Assembly (NCBI GenBank): GCA_964035545.1
Contig: OZ037765.1
Coordinates: 25,481,504 to 25,545,503, forward strand
Direction of reading: 5' to 3'
Length of the DNA: 64,000 nt
DNA from: Bugula neritina
Lineage: Eukaryota; Animalia; Bryozoa
Made by a program: the position numbers and the translations under genes. Under the pieces are notes generated by a model. The model saw nothing but the letters and a program-made list of their open reading frames with translations, did no database searches and was not told where the DNA came from. Below are positions 3,317-55,800 of this stretch, in pieces. Each line of letters starts with the position of its first letter. The first letter of the stretch is position 1.

Positions 3317-6300
3317 ATGGCTGATCCATTGTCAATGTTAGCTGATGACCTAGAAGACGAGGAAATTGAAATTGATACGTCCTCAAGTACTAATGATAAA
3401 TTACAAAATTCAAGTGTGTCTCAGGAGAAAACTGATGACATTGATCATGATGCTTCACATTCAAGTGCGGAACATGAACCTGGCTCAAAGGATTTGGATG
3501 TATGTATATTTATTAATGCATAATTGGCTGTTTACTAGAGAAACAGTAATTATGTGTTCAAGAAAATTTCATTTGTAGAATTTCGTTTAAGAGCTTTTGT
3601 TTCAGTTTATATGATTCATTATTCAAGTGCATTGATTTGCTTTGCTTGGCATTTGATGAGCTTGACATTTTAATAGAAATTGTCAAACTGAAACATAATG
3701 TTAGCTATATTAATAATTTTTGAGAAAATCAAGAGATTTGAAAAGTTTTTTCAAGGTAGGAGTATAGGGCAGGCTTAATTTTTTTAAAGCATTTTTCATT
3801 TTTTACACAGCTACAATCCCATCATTACTGTATAAGTTAATTTTTTATTTTCATGTGAACAAAAATGGCAATTGATATGTTTTAATAATGTCTTTCTTAT
3901 TCTGTTATATCAGCTGTAATGACGTGTATTATTTATAATGTTAGACTCCAAGTAGTGATAATTTTTTGTATTCAAGTTTGTTTGCTGACTTAAGCTTCAT
4001 AGTTTCAAACTGTTCCAAGTAAAATCTAGATTCATTTTTATGTGCCAAGAATCAATTTTCTGTTTTATATTATTAATGAAAAGAAGTGAACGAAAAATAA
4101 ACCATAGTTGGTATTCTTTTTTTGAAAACAGATAGCTTTGTGTAAGTTTTTCATCATTACTGTAATTCATGCCATTTCAAGGTTTTCTCATTAATTATTC
4201 ATGTATTGGTGCCAGAACCACTCTATATACCGGTTGTTAAATTTTTGACTAGTTAACAATTTCTACTAACCAGATTTTTTATATAAATCTTAGCATGAAT
4301 TAGAAATTAAATTTTATAATTGGAAAGACAGCTTGCTTTTTTTAGATGTAAGGGAAATTTAGGTTATTGGTCAATTTTAATGACTTTGATCATATTCTTT
4401 GAGCCTTTCAGCTAATAGATGTATTGTTTTCAAGTTCATATCAACTTTAAAAACCAAATCCTAAATTCGGACATGAATTTCATTAGGTTTTATTATCTAT
4501 AATAGGATTATATGGGACCGAGTGTCAACAATAACAAAAGAGTAAGTAGTTTAGAGTCACACTACCTCAGTCTAACTCTATGTCAGACTTTTTACTTGTA
4601 CTCAGCCTCAGTGTGCTAATACTTTGGCGTTTCAATTATTTTAAAAATGATGCTTGATGGTTTTCCCCATATCACGGCAAGACTATAAGAAATATATATT
4701 GGACTTGAAGTACCCTTTTGAATGTATATATCTTGTGTTTTCATAAAGCACCTGTTGACAAAGGTTTTGTCAATATACCACAGATTGTTCCATGTTTGAT
4801 AGTATGATAAAAGCAGTACATGCTACCCAAAAATGACAGATTGGCTATTTGTGCAAGAATTTGATGACTTTTCAGTCATTAGAAATTCATTTTCTGTAGA
4901 GAGAGGGAAATATAGACAGTCCATTATCAGATAATTTTGATATACTTGCAAAAATTGATGAAGAGATGGGCAGTGCTCCCCAGGATTTAGCAGTTACAGT
5001 CGACAATCCTGAGAAAGTAGTGAAGACCATGGAGTCCTACATTGCCTTTAGCGTCAAAACTAAGGTGACTATAGTAATATAATATATTAGTCACTCTAAT
5101 AAGGATTTTGTGTACTTCTTTTGCTATAAAGTAGAACGTCATTTCTTTTGATTTTTAGTGTGGTGAAATTCAGTAGATCGCACACTATTATTACTATAGA
5201 CTATTATCATCTCAAATGTCTTTACTTTCAACTTCAGACTACAAGAAGTAACTTTGAGGATCCTGAATATAACGTCAAAAGAAGATACAATGACTTCTTA
5301 TGGTTACGTCAACAAATTGAAGAGAAAAACCCAGCTTTAATTATACCAGTAAGTTTCCTGTTTTAACAAATAAACTGATAGCTTTGTTGTACAATGATAT
5401 TGTTGCATTGCTGAGAAATATACTCGATATGATATTGTAACTTAATTTATCATATTTTAAGATTTTATGGGATAGCTGTTAGAATTTAAGATAATATATA
5501 TGATGAAGTTTCCACATATCTGTGCTAAAATTTGTCCTTGCTAATGAGAAGGGCACAGAGAAAGTTATTGCTAAAGTTATTCATGCTATCATTGTACAGT
5601 TGCTCTGTAAGAGGTATATTATTTGCTTTACTACTTACTATCTCATAGTTCATTCCCTTTCTTGCTTCACTATATCAGTCAATTAAATCAGCATTTGAAA
5701 ACTGCATTTGGGCTTTTTAGAGCAAGCTAAGCAACTTATGTTGCACTTACTGTTATATATATTAGCTTGTATTAACACATTACTAAATAGGGATGGGGTA
5801 AAGCAAAGATAAGTGCTTTTAGGTAACAACTTGTTTTGTTTTGTTATAGCCTCTTCCTGAAAAGCACAATCTGACAATTGACAGATTCGATAAAGAATTT
5901 GTTAAATTTCGGCAAGTTGCATTGGACCGGTTTATGAAAAGATTGAGTTTACATCCTATAACATCACAGGACTCTACTCTCAAAGCTTTTCTCACTCTAG
6001 ATGGCAGTGTAAGATACTAAGCGCAAATTGTTTTTATATGTCCATGTTGTGAAATTAAAAACTGCTGCAGCAAGTTATTTGTATTGTAGCTAAGTCTATG
6101 GTTTTTACTGAATTACCAGATTTATATTTTGTCTGGTATATTTTTCTCTTTTGCTATAACTATCCATGTTCTCAGCATTTTCTAATGCAATCCCCCTTCC
6201 CCCCCCCCCCCCATGTCTTTTATTTTCATTACTTATGGACCAGCAGCTATTAGTTATTTCACAGTCACAAAAGTAACTGCTACAATACTTTAATTCAACA

Positions 6301-9300
6301 GAGATGATATTAGTTGAGATAATTTGTGTGTAATACATGTTTGTAGTTGAACTACAAATTAATATTCATTTTAAAACCCCGCCTAAATGATTTGGCATAG
6401 TGATTGTAACTTGCTAGGAGTTTCAAGTATTTAAGAAGCAAGGAGCTGGACTATTATCCCGTGTAACCAAGTCGTTGAGTACCAAAGGTGGCAGTCTGAT
6501 GCTGAAGAATCGAGCTGAGGAATACAGCAAGATGTACGAATATGCTCAATCATTTGGACAGAAAATGGCCATCTTTGAGAGAATTGCCCTCAGGGTTTCA
6601 AGTGAACAAAATGGTATTTTGATTAGAGATTCCTTTATAGAAATGCTTTACTTAGTTGTAACTGTACCGTTGGTTTTAAACTCTAGTTATGAAAAGCGAT
6701 GTTCTACGATAATAATGTTGAAAGGTTAATTAATCATATTCTTTGCTTTTCATTCTAATTTTCTAATCAATGTAGGCTACTATTTGCTAATCCTTGTAGT
6801 CTAGACAATAGCTTCTTTTATCATAATGAGTTACCTTATAGCAATAGCAACTACTAACTCATTTTAATTTTTGCAAAATTTTATTTTTAGAGCAAAATAA
6901 ATGTTCATTTTTCACGCAAGCATTGCCCCAGGATTGTTTATTCATGTTCTATGGTGTTTTGCTTCAGATTACCTCCAAGCTTTGGCGGGCTATGTACCGG
7001 CTTATGAAGAGTGGGCGGCTAAAGAAACTGAACTTGCTGGAAATCTTTCGGCAATGGCAAAGTTGATGTCTTCATTGCATGATAATCTTAAGTCAATGGT
7101 ATAAAAACACGTTTTCTCTACAACTTGTGTAATGCAGGGTTTATACTGCATGATAGAATTTGTTTAAAGACTTTTCCTTCACATAGAGAACTCTTGTATA
7201 ACAAATATGTTTATGCTGGATAGATTTGATAGTTCAAGCTTTTTAACGGTAAAAATGTCAGCTTTATAAAGTGCTTCAAAAATAAAAAGCTATTTGAAAA
7301 CCAATTAAGTCTTCAAGGTATGTTTATTCTTGCTTTTACATGAGCTCTTAGTTTTCTCAATTCTCTCTTGTTCTGTTACGGTGCTGTAGAGCAAGTTTAT
7401 AAATAAATTAGACATCTGTAAGTTCCTTGCATGAAATATTATTGTTTAAATTAAATGAGCTAATATACAGTGTTTTAATGTTGCAGGTAGATGAAACCAG
7501 CTTGAAGATAATTTTACCCACAAAAGAATATTTCTTGTTCACTGACTCTATTAAGGTTTGTCTTTCCTATGTTTTTTGGCACACGCATGCTATGTGCAGG
7601 TTTTATATTATGATCAGGCAATTCTCAACTTGTGGGCTAATTTTTGTATCTGCATCATTTTTTGTGAAAATAGCACAGGGTCTACTGGACAAGTAGCTGC
7701 ATGCTAAGCTAATTTTGTGGTGAAGTGCTGTCTGGCAGAAATAAGTGGAGTGGGAAACTATGATTAGATAAGGCTACATCCTAAGCTAGATTTATTTCAT
7801 GGAATAATACATTTTTGCTATTTCAAAAATACTGAAGCTCTTAGATGGGAATTTGATTTCTCCTACATTTTAGTAATAGCTGTTATTGGGGGGTAGCAAC
7901 ACATACAAAGGACTTGCCTGGCTCTATTCAAACTTGATAGTCACAAAAAGTGGTTAAATTTCTTACCCAAATGAAGTTTCGTGTTATTAGTCACTGGTAT
8001 CTTCTAACATAGGCCAACAATTTTAAAAGGCAATTGTGGGAATCTAGCTCCTTTGCCATTGATGCATATAGTTGATTTTCTGTAAATGGATACTTGATTT
8101 TCCAGTGTTGGCTCTACTTCCTTTGTAAGATAGAGGCATTTATGCTATAAAGAGCTGATCAAACAGCTAAGCAAATATCATGTCACTAGCTAATAGTAAC
8201 ATTACCTAGCTGTAATTCTATGCCACTGAAGTCTCGGCCCATATTCTTAGGTTGATTAGCACTTTCCAATCATGGATAACTTGCAATACTTATTGCTTAG
8301 TATTTTGGTGAATATGTTTAGTTTGATTATTATTGATATGCAGTATACTGTTGGTATATTTAGATAGTGTGTGCAATTGAATAACTTCATTACAAAATTG
8401 AGTATCATTGTGACCACCAACTACAAAATATGATTATAACTTCATAAAAAGTCTTAGAAAAAAAATTGGTTTCACTGGGGTTCGAACCCAGGACCTTCTG
8501 CGTGTGAAGCAGACGTGATAGCCACTACACTATGAAACCTCCGTGAAAAGGCAATGCATATTTGAGAACTGCTTCAACATTTCAATCGCCTCGAGCAAAT
8601 TACGATTTTGTATTTGTCTTTTTATTCCTGGTACAAGTGCACCAGGTTGTTAGTACTTTAAAATCATTATAACAGTAATAACATAATAATATTATTTTTG
8701 TGCTGCTTGCTGGTATTCCAACAACTAAAGAAGATTAAGATAAAATTGGAAGGACAACTTCCAAGTTTAAAAAATAGCAGTTGCTTTTAGACACGAGATA
8801 GAAAAAAACTGTCACGTGTATGAGTCCCTTCTTGCCCGCTTTCTATTCCATGTAGGCTCAAAAGAATTTTTTTTATTCATATTTTGCTTCGGTTCTTCTG
8901 AAAATTGTTGCAGCTTTATCCAAGATAAATATAGGAAAAATATAATACAAGTAGAAATGTTGATATCTGTTAGGAAGAATAGAGTGCATAGTGCCTCCAC
9001 ATTTACAGCATAGCAGTTTAAAATCTGAGACAACCTTGGTAATTTAAGAATTGAATGTTGTTAAAAAGACCCATCTTATTGTTTATTCAAGTTTATCTAG
9101 TATTTTAAGGTTCAAACTTTGTTAGAAACTCCATAGATTTAAAACCTCCATTGATTAGATCATCACTTCATTTCCATAAAAAATTTCCTCATCAAACTGC
9201 CTTTGGCTGTGAGTTGTTGGCATACTGTGATATAGATCTGTAGTTGCCTTTAGAGAAGATTCATATTGATGTTATGCTCATTAAACTGCCAATCCTAAGT

Positions 9301-49398: not shown

Positions 49399-52214
49399 AT
49401 GGACACTCCGCACGCATACAACCAATTTCTACTGCCGCCTAGTCCGTGCCAGGAGTTCAGGGTGAGTTAAGACGAATTGATATTTATTAATAATAGCAGA
49501 AATTCATGTGTTAAGTAATCACGATGTTGCTCATTATAATAACTGCTATTACTATTAGTGTAACTATTCTACTTTTGGCGGTAACACTCGTATTCATATT
49601 GATAATGCAGCGACCCAATATTTTGAATTTTGCAATAGACTGTGTCTCTCATGCTGGCAAAATGGTACGAGAGCTTATAAAGTAGCATAAGTCGAAGAGC
49701 AATTTGGACCAAATGCTTTTATATAATAAATATCAACAGCTCAGCCAGTATTTCGAACTTGTGCTCTTGTCATTGCGTCCTCATCTTGGATCATACTGAT
49801 AGTAATACTCATACTATCAGTATCAGTATTCTTAGCCTCTGATTATGATGATCCTAGCTGCAAAATTAGATGTGTTTCAAGAAAACCCCATATTATTATA
49901 TTTATATTGATAGAGGAATAAAACTAGACTCGGCCACCTTAAAGTTGGTCATACTAATAGCTGTAATAATAAATAATAAAAAATTATATATCTATCATTA
50001 AATCTCACAGTGGAGCTGTTGTCATACCACTATCTGGCCAATCAAATTCACATTAAGTAATCGGTAGCTATATGCCATAGCTACAGCCTATCTTAAATTT
50101 GAAGTTTTTCTCTTTTGAATTGCACCCCTCCTTGGCATGCATCATGGTCATGATTTTATAATACAATTACAAAGCATAATCCATATACATTATTCAGAAG
50201 AGTTTGTGTTATTCCAACAGGAACATTACTTGGCTGATTCGTCTATGTACCTTGATGATACTTGGAAACATCAGCCTGATTACAGCTCGGATTCAAATCC
50301 CTCCATGTCTCCACTCCATGATTATGTTCCTCAAAGCTCCCCAAATCTCACCAGTATGACTTCATTCATGCCTGGTTCTGATTATAGGATCATGGGCACA
50401 AGCTCCAACTATAATGCCTCCTCGCTGCAGTCAGGTAGTCTAAATAATCTGTATATCACTAGATATATCTCATCTTCACACTTCTCATATTTAAAATTAA
50501 ATATGTGGAGGTATTGCCTCATCCTAGATTCAAATATTGGTAGTCTACATGTACATTAAATTTATAAACTTGAAAGCCCATATTAATTTTCATTAAATGC
50601 TGATAAGTCGATCATTATTGCAGGGGAGTCGTGTGGTTGGCAAAATAAGTCTCCCCAATGCTGGGAACAGTGTGACGTATTGCAGTGGATACAAAGTCAG
50701 TGTGGTGGGAGGGCTGTTCGCTGGGACGCATTTGGGGATGTTGATGGCGCGAAGATGTGTGGCATGTCAATGGAAGATTTTCAGCACCGTGACCCGAACA
50801 ACGGATGCCAGCTCTACATGGCTTTTGATGAAATCAAACAAAGGGATCTCCAGTACCAACAGGTTTACTTTCAACAGCAAACTGAAGCACCCATCAACCA
50901 ACAAGGTAATATTTCAATGACTGCCCAATTACCAATAAATATTTGTAGTCGAAATTTTATAGTTTTAAAATAAATTGCCAATAAGTTTTTAAGTATATTC
51001 TAATTTTAAAGTGATGGCTGGTAAGTCAAGTTGTCTGATTATTAATTTTAGGAGAGGGACAAATTCCATCATTGTCACTGGACAGTTTCATTGCTATGGT
51101 TTCTTTTGATAAACATGACCAATTTACTTCTCTACCTGGCATCGATACTTTCACAACAACGCCTGATGCTCAGCCAGCCACATCTGCTGCACCAGTGCCA
51201 TTGGTGCTACCAAAACCAGAGCCGAATGACACAGACTCTGATCGACCATCACCCCCATCATCTCCAGCAACGTCTGAAGATTCCTACATCTCCACACGGC
51301 CTGTGAACAGAAGTAAGTAGATATAGCTGAATATTTTGATGGAATAAATAGGCCAGATGTTTGCTGAGTTACTTTTCTATACCATATTTTTGTTACAGGA
51401 GGAAGAACCAAAGGGAAGCTTTGGGAATTTGTACTTAGTCTGCTAATGAATAAGCAACACAACCCAGAAATCATCAAATGGGAGGATAGGGCAAATGGAG
51501 TATTTCGAATTGTTCGGTCTGACCAGGTAGCCAAGCTCTGGGGCATCAGAAAATCCAACCCTTCAATGACCTATGAGAAGATGTCTCGTGCCATGAGGTA
51601 GTGTATGGAAATAAAAATATATTATATTGAATCATAGTATGCTGAAGAGAAAAGGTCAAAGGAGCTTTTTAAAATTAAAATGGGCAATTGGAAAGCAAAT
51701 GACCACTTTCTTTGTCATGTGTATAGGTACACCCGCAAAATGGGATTTCTGGCAGAACTTCCTGAGGGCCACAATTACCCCAGGAAGTTAACCTTCAAAA
51801 TGGGTGAAAATGCCACTGGTTGGCGTTAGGTTAGAAATTCAGAGTGGAAACCCTTTTTACTATAACCACACTGTTTTATCATTATCACTACTGACCCTTC
51901 ACTTCGTAAAGCTGTTCTGTGGCATAACATTTTTCATCATGTCAATTGTTTTTATGCACAGGACTACTTTTCCAGCTTGTCTGCTTCCAGCTTTCATATA
52001 ATAGCAGTGTGTGTGTAAACTTTCTTCTGTTTCCATGTTTTGTTATACAAAAATTGTTGCAATTAAAGCTGTACAAAATAAAATGGCTTCATAATCATAT
52101 AACTTTTTTTCTGATGGCAGGTATTACTACAGAAAGAACATTCTTGAAAGAATAGATGGAAGGCGTTTGGTTTATAAATTTGGAGCATCTTCAAGAGGAT
52201 GGCAACTTGACTAA
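49399..52214 (+). CDS. EHF: ESE-class ETS transcription factor (EHF/ELF3/ELF5-like) with PNT/SAM and ETS domains; canonical isoform exons 49399-49461, 50221-50434, 50624-50905, 51052-51312, 51399-51597, 52121-52214
   Basis: PNT domain: [18 protein letters not shown]...[13 protein letters not shown]...[11 protein letters not shown] domain: [10 protein letters not shown]...[41 protein letters not shown]|[27 protein letters not shown]. The tail is typical of the ESE subfamily. The symbol marks the subfamily, not strict orthology. Confidence 0.9.
51727..51829 (+). CDS. Alternative (proximal) terminal exon of the ETS gene encoding a divergent helix-3 end and wing: (R)[33 protein letters not shown]
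   Basis: Acceptor CTTTCTTTGTCATGTGTATAG in the same phase (2) as the distal exon. The frame is open and aligns to the distal exon (RKLTFKMG....GW vs RRLVYKFG....GW). It has its own stop and a downstream AATAAA. Confidence 0.82.
52077..52082 (+). promoter_or_regulatory. Candidate poly(A) signal for the proximal ETS terminal exon
   Basis: AATAAA (with ATTAAA at 52062-67) about 250 nt after the proximal stop and about 40 nt before the distal exon acceptor. The distal exon has its own AATAAA at 52520-25. Confidence 0.55.
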
Positions 52215-52858
52215 TTCCATTGATCTTTTAACTCTCTCTCCCTTACCGACCTGCACTTGTACACCGGACTCTGGCACAAAACTTGGCATTTCTGGCCATG
52301 TATTTTTCTTTTGTTACAATAACCTCAAAGTAATTGAGATTAAAAAGTAGCTTCTATGAAGCATTTAAAAGTATAGTTTTATTATACTTGCACAACTAGT
52401 TTTATATTTGTATTTTATATTTCTGAGTGAAGAAAACCCACATAATATATATATATCTATTAAATTTATATTTTATCTTTCAACCCTTGAATTGTTACAA
52501 ATTTGAGCTAAAATTATATAATAAACTATATTATATCCATGGCTAATATTGTGAATTCAAATTTGTAAAATATGTAAAATTCTACGTATCAAGAAATTAG
52601 CTACTGCTAACATTGTACTAAAGTTAATTTGCTGTAAAAGATTATGAATGCCCCTTTAAAAGTATATTTGAAAGAAATGATTGAGCTTAGCAGGTTTCAA
52701 TTGCAAAAAGTGAGATAACCAAGTAAGCAAAAAATGTCGATATGTATAAAGATCTCTGATTCAAAAGCACAAATGCCAAGACGATAGTGAATAGTTGTGA
52801 ACCTGTCCATTATATAACCACTATGGCCCTAAGCATACAGATAGAGGACAGGTGGTGG

Positions 52859-55800
52859 CTACCAGGCAAATCGGTCTATAAGCAACTGTTGTCCTTCCAG
52901 ATCTTTCTGTACCTTTTTCCGTAAATAAAATATTGGACAATCTCGACTACAAATTCACAAACCAGGAGTGAGTGTAGTGAAAAAAATGAATCGAAAAGCT
53001 TGAGACTTTTATAATTACAAAAACAACTAGCTACTTGAACAAACTCCATGATGTTTATAAGTATAGAAATTAATAATAATCAACAACTGCAGATTATATA
53101 AGACTAGTTGAAGGCAGCAATGAAGTGAATCTCTACCATACAGTAAATACAGTAAAAGTATACCTTTGAAGCTATCTCTGCTCTGCTTATAAACTGGTTT
53201 TAACAAAGCCAAGATTTTGAGTTGCAATATCACAAGATTTCAATAAATGCAGTGCATGTTGGGTAAAACTGCAGATCAAACTTAACCTATCAAATACATA
53301 GAAATACAGTAGCACCACTAGCCAACCTGGTACATAGAACTTCTTCATGTAAACTGCCTGAACATCTTTGACATTGAGTCCACAGCTTTGAGAAATTCTC
53401 TTCTAAATGTTGCAAATTTGAGATTTCTTTCTGATATATTTCAGATTCTTTTGCCTTGCAGTAAGGACACACTGCTTGCGATTCGTCTAAAAATATTCCA
53501 ATTGTACACAACAAAACTTGCCAAGCTATCTTGCAAACATTATTTCAGGGAATTGATGCAATATTTGCACAAATGATCCTGGCTAAGATAAAGACTTCCA
53601 GACACTTCTTTTTGCAAATGGCGCCATTTAGTATGGCTGTTATCACTGAACAGTTTATATAACAGCTAAACCAAAATTAGTTGAATGCAAATGGACAGTG
53701 AACTAAGCCAATCAAACAGCTGTGAACACTGTTGAAACTAAAAGTGATTTAATTTTTTAGAAATTTCACTCCTGTCTCAGTGAAACTAACCATTTGCACT
53801 AACATTGTGACTGTCACTGACTGATGAATCAGTGTGAATGCATATAACACATTACTATATATAGAAGCTATCATGTAGAGTTCAAGTAAGATAAGTTTGT
53901 TTCAAATTTCAACACAAGCCAACCAGTGAAATAAATCGTATAAGAGATTCAAGGCAATCATACCTTTGGAGTCCAATGCTGCCCGGCAGCCTACACACGT
54001 CACCCTCTTTTTGGTGAAGGCAGCCAGCCCACCGACTTTAGACATAACTACAGTTTTCACTCTGGTATGATCGCCATCTAAAACATATTTCAAATAACGG
54101 TTATTTCCACATGTTTTCCACCATTGCAATGACAAGATTATAGATATATGCTGGAGCAGAAGACAGAACTTTATAGTACAAGAAGTTGTCCAAGTGTCTG
54201 ACTATGAAATAAACAATAACATTTTAAACCAGAAAACCAAATTACAAATTAAAAAATTAAAGCTGAGTAAAAGTTTGCATCACTGTATCCAACAGCCAAC
54301 CTGCACCCTAACCAGAAGGCAGAAAACCATTATGAGAAATACGCCATAACTGCATGTATATAGCCGTAGGGCAGTAGCAGAACTCACGGAGAAGAACTGA
54401 TTCAGCTTTCTTCTCTCCAAGTATAGGTTCAAATATGCGGAGTAGTGGCTTGGCTATCTGTTGGTCCAAGTAATATTTGGTGTCAATTGGGATATTGTTG
54501 TCCAATACATAAATGGGATCCTGTAGGAGACAAAATATACTTGTATGTACTTATTGCGGTGTAACCTATTCATCTACTTCACAACTCCAGTCACACAATC
54601 CATCAAGCTGATGCGAAGAATGTACAACAGCTAGGGGAAGTCCCTTACACACCAGCCACAAGCTGGCATTATTTTTGTTCATTCAACCAATGATAGTATC
54701 AACGCGATACGTCACTTGGCAAACAACAACCATAATGGCTAACATAATGGAATCGCAATAACCAGTGTAGCACCTGGCAGTGCTCAAAATGGCGTACTTT
54801 AGATGTACGTTAAAAATATTTTCAACTATGAAGCAACTGCAAACAGCCATACCCTGGATCCTTTTAAAAACCTTATTTTAAAAGAAAAACATTAAGGGAG
54901 CTCTTTCGTTTTGGGTGTTACGTACAGAGTTGAGTCACACAGGGTCCGCTAGAGTGTAACCCATATCTGGAGCAAAGCCAGGTCACGTACACATTATGCC
55001 TTGTCACATGACCTGCGCATAAAAATAGCTCAGTGATCGATTGCACAGAGGTATGCAGCTTACAACTGGTTGTTATTTTTCATACCGAGCCTGTTAGGCA
55101 GGGGAGGTACAGAATTTCACCCACCTAGATACCTGTAACTGATGTTAGAGTAGCTGCAACCGCTACTACTACTACCACTATTAACACTACCACTAGTCCT
55201 TTACTAAAATTACCACCACTGCTACCACCACCACTGTTACCATTACTACTACTATCACCACTTCCACCACTACCACTATTACTTCCACTAGTAGTAGTGG
55301 CACTGAGAAGTCACTAAAACACTTATAATAAGAAATTTTCACTCTTTAATAAAAACCATTAAAAGCTTTGCTCTTTCTGCAAAGTTGCAGTTTGTAATTC
55401 TGGTTTCAAACCAGGAGCTTCGTAGACCAGGCATAGGCTATAGATTTTTATCTACACTATTACTTGGAATTGTGGGAAGCTAGTAGGCCTCTAGCATAGA
55501 GACAATTTGTGGCAATGATAAGATTCCATGACTATCTGACTGTTCCACTGACATTAATAATGTAATTCAATAGAGATCAATAGGAAAGAACCATCAGGTG
55601 ATGTTGACAATACTTTTGTAAAATACCAAGTGCGCACTTATCAATACCACATATGTAACAAGTTTCAGTAAAACTGAAAAAAGATGCTGTCATTGTAAAG
55701 CTACATGCAGACTAACATGTAACAAAATTCAAAACCAGATTAACTTTGGTGGCTGATGATTTGAGTTAAAATATCACTAAAGAAATAACATTAAAAGAAG

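Follow-up and report, generated by a model that had tools for sequence, protein, structure and literature searches.

The closest described case to the gene reported here is FoxP/FoxP1, in which a tandem-duplicated exon encodes part of the forkhead winged-helix domain; the duplication is placed at the base of Bilateria, and the isoforms differ in residues that matter for DNA contact while the fold is kept (Santos et al. 2011, PMC3002244). Two papers on tandem duplicated exon substitutions describe neighboring homologous exons that share a phase and are both selected; most such events are ancient, and the isoforms are identical except for one homologous segment (PMC8373072, PMC9741552). Here we report a gene of the bryozoan Bugula neritina in which two homologous exons, A and B, can each complete an ETS DNA-binding domain that is begun by a common exon 1. 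The gene lies in a stretch of 64,000 nucleotides (nt) of contig OZ037765.1 (hereafter, the window; positions are those of the window unless a contig is named). The explanation that we consider likely is that this is an ESE-class gene with an ancient tandem duplication of its last coding exon, that exon A serves as a cassette bearing a stop, and that two factors with different wings would result.

Like FoxP/FoxP1, the window gene has an ancient duplicated exon within a winged-helix DNA-binding domain. The differences are that the FoxP/FoxP1 exons are internal and belong to a forkhead fold, whereas the window gene has an ETS domain, its proximal copy has a stop, and its distal copy would double as a 3' untranslated region (3'UTR). 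Homology, a common phase and selection on both copies, by which tandem duplicated exons are recognized, are seen in the window gene as well. It is unlike exclusive-exon splicing in that a transcript of the mollusc Pinctada holds both exons, and exclusivity comes from the stop that ends exon A. In the literature on alternative or duplicated exons of ETS domains we found no description of a two-ending ETS gene or of an A-type ending, and an ETS-family survey of eleven molluscs mentions neither splicing nor a variant domain. A-type endings were already present, unremarked, in database protein models.

The gene is an ESE-class (EHF/ELF3/ELF5-like) transcription-factor gene with both a PNT and an ETS domain. 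In this it resembles the vertebrate ESE factors (EHF/ESE-3, ELF3/ESE-1, and ELF5/ESE-2), which have a PNT domain and a C-terminal ETS domain. Exon 1 plus exon B aligned over the full length with EHF (PDB 10sm), ELF5 (1wwx), and Elf3 (3jtg), the best-matching proteins of solved structure, and a GxxxxGW tail after beta4 is common to the window gene and the ESE factors. The full-length protein of a relative (P0134) mapped onto the PNT region, exon 1 and exon B of the window. The best database matches of this protein were named ETS homologous factor or Elf-3/5, and its best full-length match came from the cheilostome bryozoan Watersipora subatra. The parts of the gene, which lies in AT-rich DNA (about 33% G+C in the window; assembly of 216 Mb), are as follows.

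50635..50847, + strand: PNT (SAM_PNT) coding region, located by tblastn of protein P0134
51072..51313, + strand: exon of a Ser/Pro/Thr-rich linker, with an open frame and a phase that joins exon 1
51399..51597, + strand: ETS exon 1, helix 1 to helix 3, common to both forms (Pfam Ets, 7.2e-23)
51598..51726, + strand: intron between exon 1 and exon A, 129 nt
51727..51829, + strand: exon A, alternative C-terminal third of the ETS domain (A-type), from its translation and conservation
51830..51835, + strand: candidate 5' splice site GTTAGA right after the exon-A stop, which we infer to be used in Bugula neritina
51830..52120, + strand: intron between exon A and exon B, 291 nt
52121..52214, + strand: coding part of exon B, canonical ESE-type ETS ending (Pfam Ets, 3.3e-4, profile positions 61-80)

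A first-pass annotation of the window had proposed that the ETS domain is split by an intron within the second arginine of helix 3 and that two exons of the same phase can complete it. Read from the letters of the window, the base-level positions and translations of exon 1, exon A and exon B agree with that proposal. Exon 1, whose Pfam Ets match spans profile positions 1-59 of 81, starts with two bases that finish a codon and ends in ATG AG/GTAGTG (the slash marks the splice border), which splits the second helix-3 arginine (MSRAM-R). Both helix-3 arginines of the ETS domain are present, the SRAMR motif being readable in the window. The acceptors of exon A (GTGTATAG/G) and exon B (GATGGCAG/G) are both AG/G and finish the same arginine codon in the same phase. 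Exon A then has 33 codons followed by TAG, and exon B has 30 codons followed by TAA. Exon 1 was 86% identical to the relative's transcript P0134, and exon B was 93% identical to Watersipora P0136 and 83% identical to P0134.

Conservation of exon A

The databases were searched with exon 1, which gave genomic open frames of related species, and their contigs were compared. The window clade consists of the window and five orthologous contigs (L012, L014, L015/L016, L017, and L019). An open A-type frame was present between exon 1 and a canonical exon B in all five of these further contigs; in each it was preceded by AG and in phase, and its stop fell one to three codons past the conserved GW. Sixteen of the 33 exon-A positions were invariant in this comparison. 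The ratio of nonsynonymous to synonymous substitution (dN/dS) of exon A was 0.03-0.08 in the three closest pairs, comparable to that of exon 1 and exon B. In distant pairs the proportion of synonymous differences (pS) was saturated (0.8-1.0), and exon A showed 58-70% amino-acid identity and a proportion of nonsynonymous differences (pN) of about 0.25, much like exon 1.

A contig from a sister species (L020) was colinear with 50611-54149 of the window at 92.5% identity. Exon A was identical at 103 of 103 positions, exon 1 at 98.0% and exon B at 97.9%, whereas the introns flanking exon A were 93.8% (upstream) and 91.9% (between exon A and exon B) identical. The longest perfect run in this 3.5-kb alignment measured 131 nt (51724-51854); it takes in the acceptor, all of exon A and the bases immediately downstream. 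Further upstream, the linker exon was 95.0% identical and the intron that follows it 90.6%.

Decay and chance are excluded because the frame is conserved, dN/dS is low and the sister species matches exon A at every base. On these comparisons, exon A is a genuine coding exon under strong purifying selection, and both copies are selected. The first-pass annotation had argued for selection on exon A rather than decay, and the comparison bears it out: the tandem of A and B recurs in the five further contigs, with dN/dS far below 1.

A protein search with the 49-residue open frame of exon A matched only an open reading frame of the sister species and one already known contig, and a scan of metagenomes with an exon-A profile re-found only the species of L012. 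In the intron upstream of exon A, a 71-nt block (51635-51705) was identical in the sister species, and the rest of the intron holds the substitutions. The block might help to control how exon A is spliced.

Age and fold of the A-type ending

The first-pass annotation had also stated that A and B are homologous through exon duplication and that the beta3-beta4 wing loop is five residues longer in A. Both statements held. A profile-profile comparison (hhalign) of six exon-A peptides against seven exon-B peptides gave a probability of 95% and an E value of 1.8e-8, a similarity beyond what chance would give. With HMMER, an A-type domain aligned with human EHF over the full length, with a single insertion of five residues in the beta3-beta4 loop. 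The A-type ending keeps the arginines that read GGA and the next aromatic residue; the two tyrosines after that are replaced.

A search of 1.84 billion representative proteins with a profile built from the six exon-A peptides, at a cut-off of E ≤ 1e-3, returned 66 proteins, mostly full-length PNT+ETS or ETS proteins, and in most of them the A-type segment formed the last 33 residues, directly after SR[AS]xR. The named matches included molluscs (Pinctada, Haliotis ["ETS homologous factor-like isoform X3"], Sinanodonta, Physella, Tegillarca, three Crassostrea species ["Elf-3" isoforms], Aplysia, Patella, and Lymnaea), the brachiopod Lingula, the annelid Capitella, and the nematode Enterobius, whose model has an A-like segment of intermediate character and, after it, a B segment. 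Among named proteins, the A type was confined to protostomes. The vertebrate ESE proteins recovered were all B-type, and the A-type ending differs from them in its two replaced tyrosines and in a wing with five more residues.

In a tree of 76 endings, which is rough since it rests on 33 columns only, a branch with support of 100/95 parted A from B. The A exons of the bryozoan clade nested in the A endings of molluscs and the brachiopod, and the B exons nested in mollusc B endings. The A and B of one gene are thus, by this tree, not each other's closest kin. Since each bryozoan ending nests with its mollusc counterpart, the duplication predates the split of these phyla. On this phylogenetic evidence, the tandem exon duplication is older than the bryozoan-mollusc split; it is ancient and widespread in lophotrochozoans, and no local novelty.

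The window gene shares its A-type ending with A-only mollusc genes (for example, the Crassostrea "Elf-3" isoforms and Physella LOC131952552), in which the conserved wing reads P-K-x-x-x-[YF]-P-K-K-L-C-F-K-F-G. Physella LOC131952552 had no B exon within 8 kb downstream and is a single-ending gene, whereas the window gene has both endings.

For the fold, we modeled the natural spliced A-type domain of Pinctada (P0018:291-385) with an alignment of 44 other A-type domains. The AlphaFold2 (AF2) model had a mean predicted local distance difference test score (pLDDT) of 95.4 and the order helix1-beta1-beta2-helix2-helix3-beta3-beta4. Its best Foldseek matches were mouse Elf3 on DNA (3jtg, template modeling [TM] score 0.87) and ELF5 (1wwx). 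The beta3-beta4 loop has about 12 residues and contains the conserved motif P-K-x-x-x-[YF]-P-K-K. According to this model of the Pinctada orthologue, the A-type ending yields a complete ESE-class ETS fold with a longer wing, as the first-pass annotation had predicted from the window.

ETS factors read GGA(A/T), and how members of the family reach different targets is an old question. In ETS-DNA structures two arginines read GGA, and contacts with flanking bases and backbone are made by the wing and by the residues that come after helix 3; these are among the few variable parts of ETS domains that touch DNA. From this general knowledge, flank preference or affinity should change when the helix end is altered and the wing is longer and rich in lysine. 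The A and B endings form a matched natural pair: the two domains share everything through the second arginine and diverge only from there on, are encoded by one gene, and have been kept for hundreds of millions of years. Such a pair makes the contribution of the wing and the helix end to ETS binding directly testable. A broader possibility, which we put forward tentatively, is that the A type is a second, undescribed type of ETS DNA-binding domain with an extended Pro/Lys-rich wing and a changed end of its recognition helix, dating back at least to the lophotrochozoan ancestor and toggled against the canonical ESE-type ending by a stop-bearing cassette in some genes, so that two factors would read the same GGA core with different flanks, affinity or partners.

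Splicing of exon A and rival explanations

The window had been described in the first-pass annotation as holding mutually exclusive terminal exons. This part of the description was not supported. In the genomic contig L021 of Pinctada imbricata (VSWD01000005.1), exon 1 ends at 6161, exon A occupies 6488-6611 and exon B starts at 7123; the exon-A stop is at 6594-6596, 15 nt ahead of the exon-A donor. Six Pinctada RNA contigs from six runs (L023-L028) splice exon 1 to A and A to B with GT-AG borders, and each carries a complete reading frame of 387 residues. In Pinctada, exon A is a cassette exon, and its own stop makes exon B a 3'UTR in that message. Mutual exclusion, where each transcript has one copy and never both, is contradicted by these six contigs with A and B together.

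The contigs of the window clade are consistent with this layout. A GT donor was found 0-7 nt past the exon-A stop in all six contigs (GTTAGA or GTTAGC in three, GTATGT in one, and GTAGGT in two), and that of the window (TAG/GTTAGA) lies inside the perfectly conserved block of the sister alignment. In five of the six contigs, neither AATAAA nor ATTAAA occurred in the interval between A and B (204-391 nt). Because Pinctada RNA reads exon 1-A-B, all six contigs have a donor after the stop and five lack a polyadenylation signal, exon A of the window is most likely a stop-bearing cassette exon like that of Pinctada, with A and B exclusive at the protein level and not in splicing.

Under this cassette explanation, skipping of exon A would join exon 1 to exon B and give a standard ETS domain. 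Inclusion of exon A would halt translation at the stop at the end of the exon, leaving exon B untranslated, and the A-form message would escape nonsense-mediated decay. A stop this near the last junction should not trigger decay that depends on exon junctions. One gene would then make two transcription factors with a common PNT domain and core-reading helix and with different wings. With its stop in the last bases, a duplicated cassette exon could in this way make the two endings exclusive in the protein; splicing need not be exclusive, and the message would not be opened to decay.

An in-frame read-through of A and B in the window was considered and rejected: the sole upstream GT (C/GTTAGG) would put exon B out of frame. 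A deposited Pinctada model (KAK3102971.1, P0079; L021:6488-7210) reads A and then B in frame, with two ETS endings. The donor of that model removes the exon-A stop; the six RNA contigs gave it no support and stop in exon A instead. In Enterobius vermicularis, the model VDD84864.1 (P0069) likewise reads through from an A-like segment into B. Both models, which read A and B serially, are flagged as annotation errors.

Products of the B form were found in relatives as P0004, P0134 and P0135 (JGI and Logan), P0137 and the Watersipora subatra RefSeq model P0136; among the relatives of the window clade, P0004, P0134, and P0137 are spliced exon 1-B products. The coding conservation of both exons in each lineage suggests that both forms are made in both lineages. 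Several observations weigh against the two-factor explanation as a whole. Exon A occurred in none of the window-clade transcripts and models recovered, which were all of the B form. From Pinctada only the A-included form was recovered, and no species was recovered with both forms. Exon A alone had no Pfam match, Ets included. The window has ATTAAA and AATAAA 233 and 248 nt past exon A, so terminal use of the exon is conceivable. The two forms probably differ in flanking-site preference, affinity or partners, a prediction drawn from general ETS-DNA contacts.

These observations bear on what else exon A might be. If A and B were true alternative last exons, each would have its own 3' end, and transcripts would be polyadenylated either between A and B or beyond B. 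The two hexamers just mentioned fit this, as does the stop that closes exon A in the manner of a last coding exon. We nevertheless regard it as unlikely: one of the two hexamers is substituted in the sister species, no canonical signal occurs in the interval in the other five contigs while a donor follows the stop in all six, and the Pinctada RNA is spliced onward from A to B. Alternative last exons have their own polyadenylation and no onward splicing; this was not what we found, and for the window alone the comparison is indecisive given its two hexamers. The absence of the A form from the window-clade transcripts, together with the lack of a Pfam match, would suit an old duplicate that is now dead and no longer spliced in the window lineage. 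That exon A is such a relic seems very improbable to us: even between lineages with saturated synonymous sites its frame remains open and in phase, both of its splice sites are conserved, and the sister species shows no change in its 103 nt, whereas 6-8% of sites differ in the introns on either side.

Exon A might instead be a regulatory "poison" exon, whose inclusion only keeps the factor from being made, through truncation or decay, and whose peptide has no role of its own. It does contain a stop codon and sit in the last intron, and its conserved flanks are typical of such regulated alternative exons. A poison exon has its stop more than about 50 nt before the last junction and an unconserved peptide; here the stop is 0-7 nt from the donor in the window clade and 15 nt in Pinctada, too near for decay dependent on exon junctions, and dN/dS indicates purifying selection at the amino-acid level. 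In addition, the conserved residues are predicted to build a confident, complete ETS fold, and genes in which the A type is the sole ending exist in Physella and in the genome of Bugula neritina itself. A poison exon is accordingly very unlikely in our judgment. The cassette explanation, with two factors that differ in their wings, remains the one we favor.

Other ETS genes and neighboring features

Further ETS genes were seen alongside. A divergent one lies on the same chromosome, about 3.3 Mb away (L002:580-801 and L002:1468-1620; G000:C1:28829643-28830683). Its exon 1 ends in MSRGIR, and an A-type open frame (VPADSKYPKKLTYKWG) follows about 700 nt on; no B-type exon was present in the following 1.5 kb, and the gene is A-only. 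On another chromosome, a paralogous ESE gene (L011:7859-8579; G000:C2, about 9863858-9864578) has the same phase-2 intron in the helix-3 arginine. That intron is only about 390 nt long and holds no exon A, so the gene is B-only; in Watersipora the counterpart bears the name "ETV6-like." In a more distant orthologue or paralogue (L018:2422-2921), the last intron is about 170 nt long and lacks exon A, and the B ending is divergent (YYYDLKILMKIEGHKLLYRFG). Molluscs too mix A+B genes (Pinctada) and A-only genes (Physella). In Patella vulgata, the protein XP_050409038.1 (P0130, "Elf-3 isoform X2") ends at SRAMR, truncated after ETS exon 1, and looks like an intron-retention product without the last third of the domain.

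At the 5' side of the window gene, Pfam SAM_PNT matched at 50680-50970 (1.5e-5). The linker exon has the donor AGAA/GTAAGT at 51313/51314, and a candidate 5' AG lies at 51050-51051. Downstream, a POLD1-like gene converges on the ETS gene from the minus strand, with C-terminal zinc-finger and polymerase exons at 53290-54505. This neighborhood is kept in two related contigs (L012, zf-C4pol; L014, DNA_pol_B).

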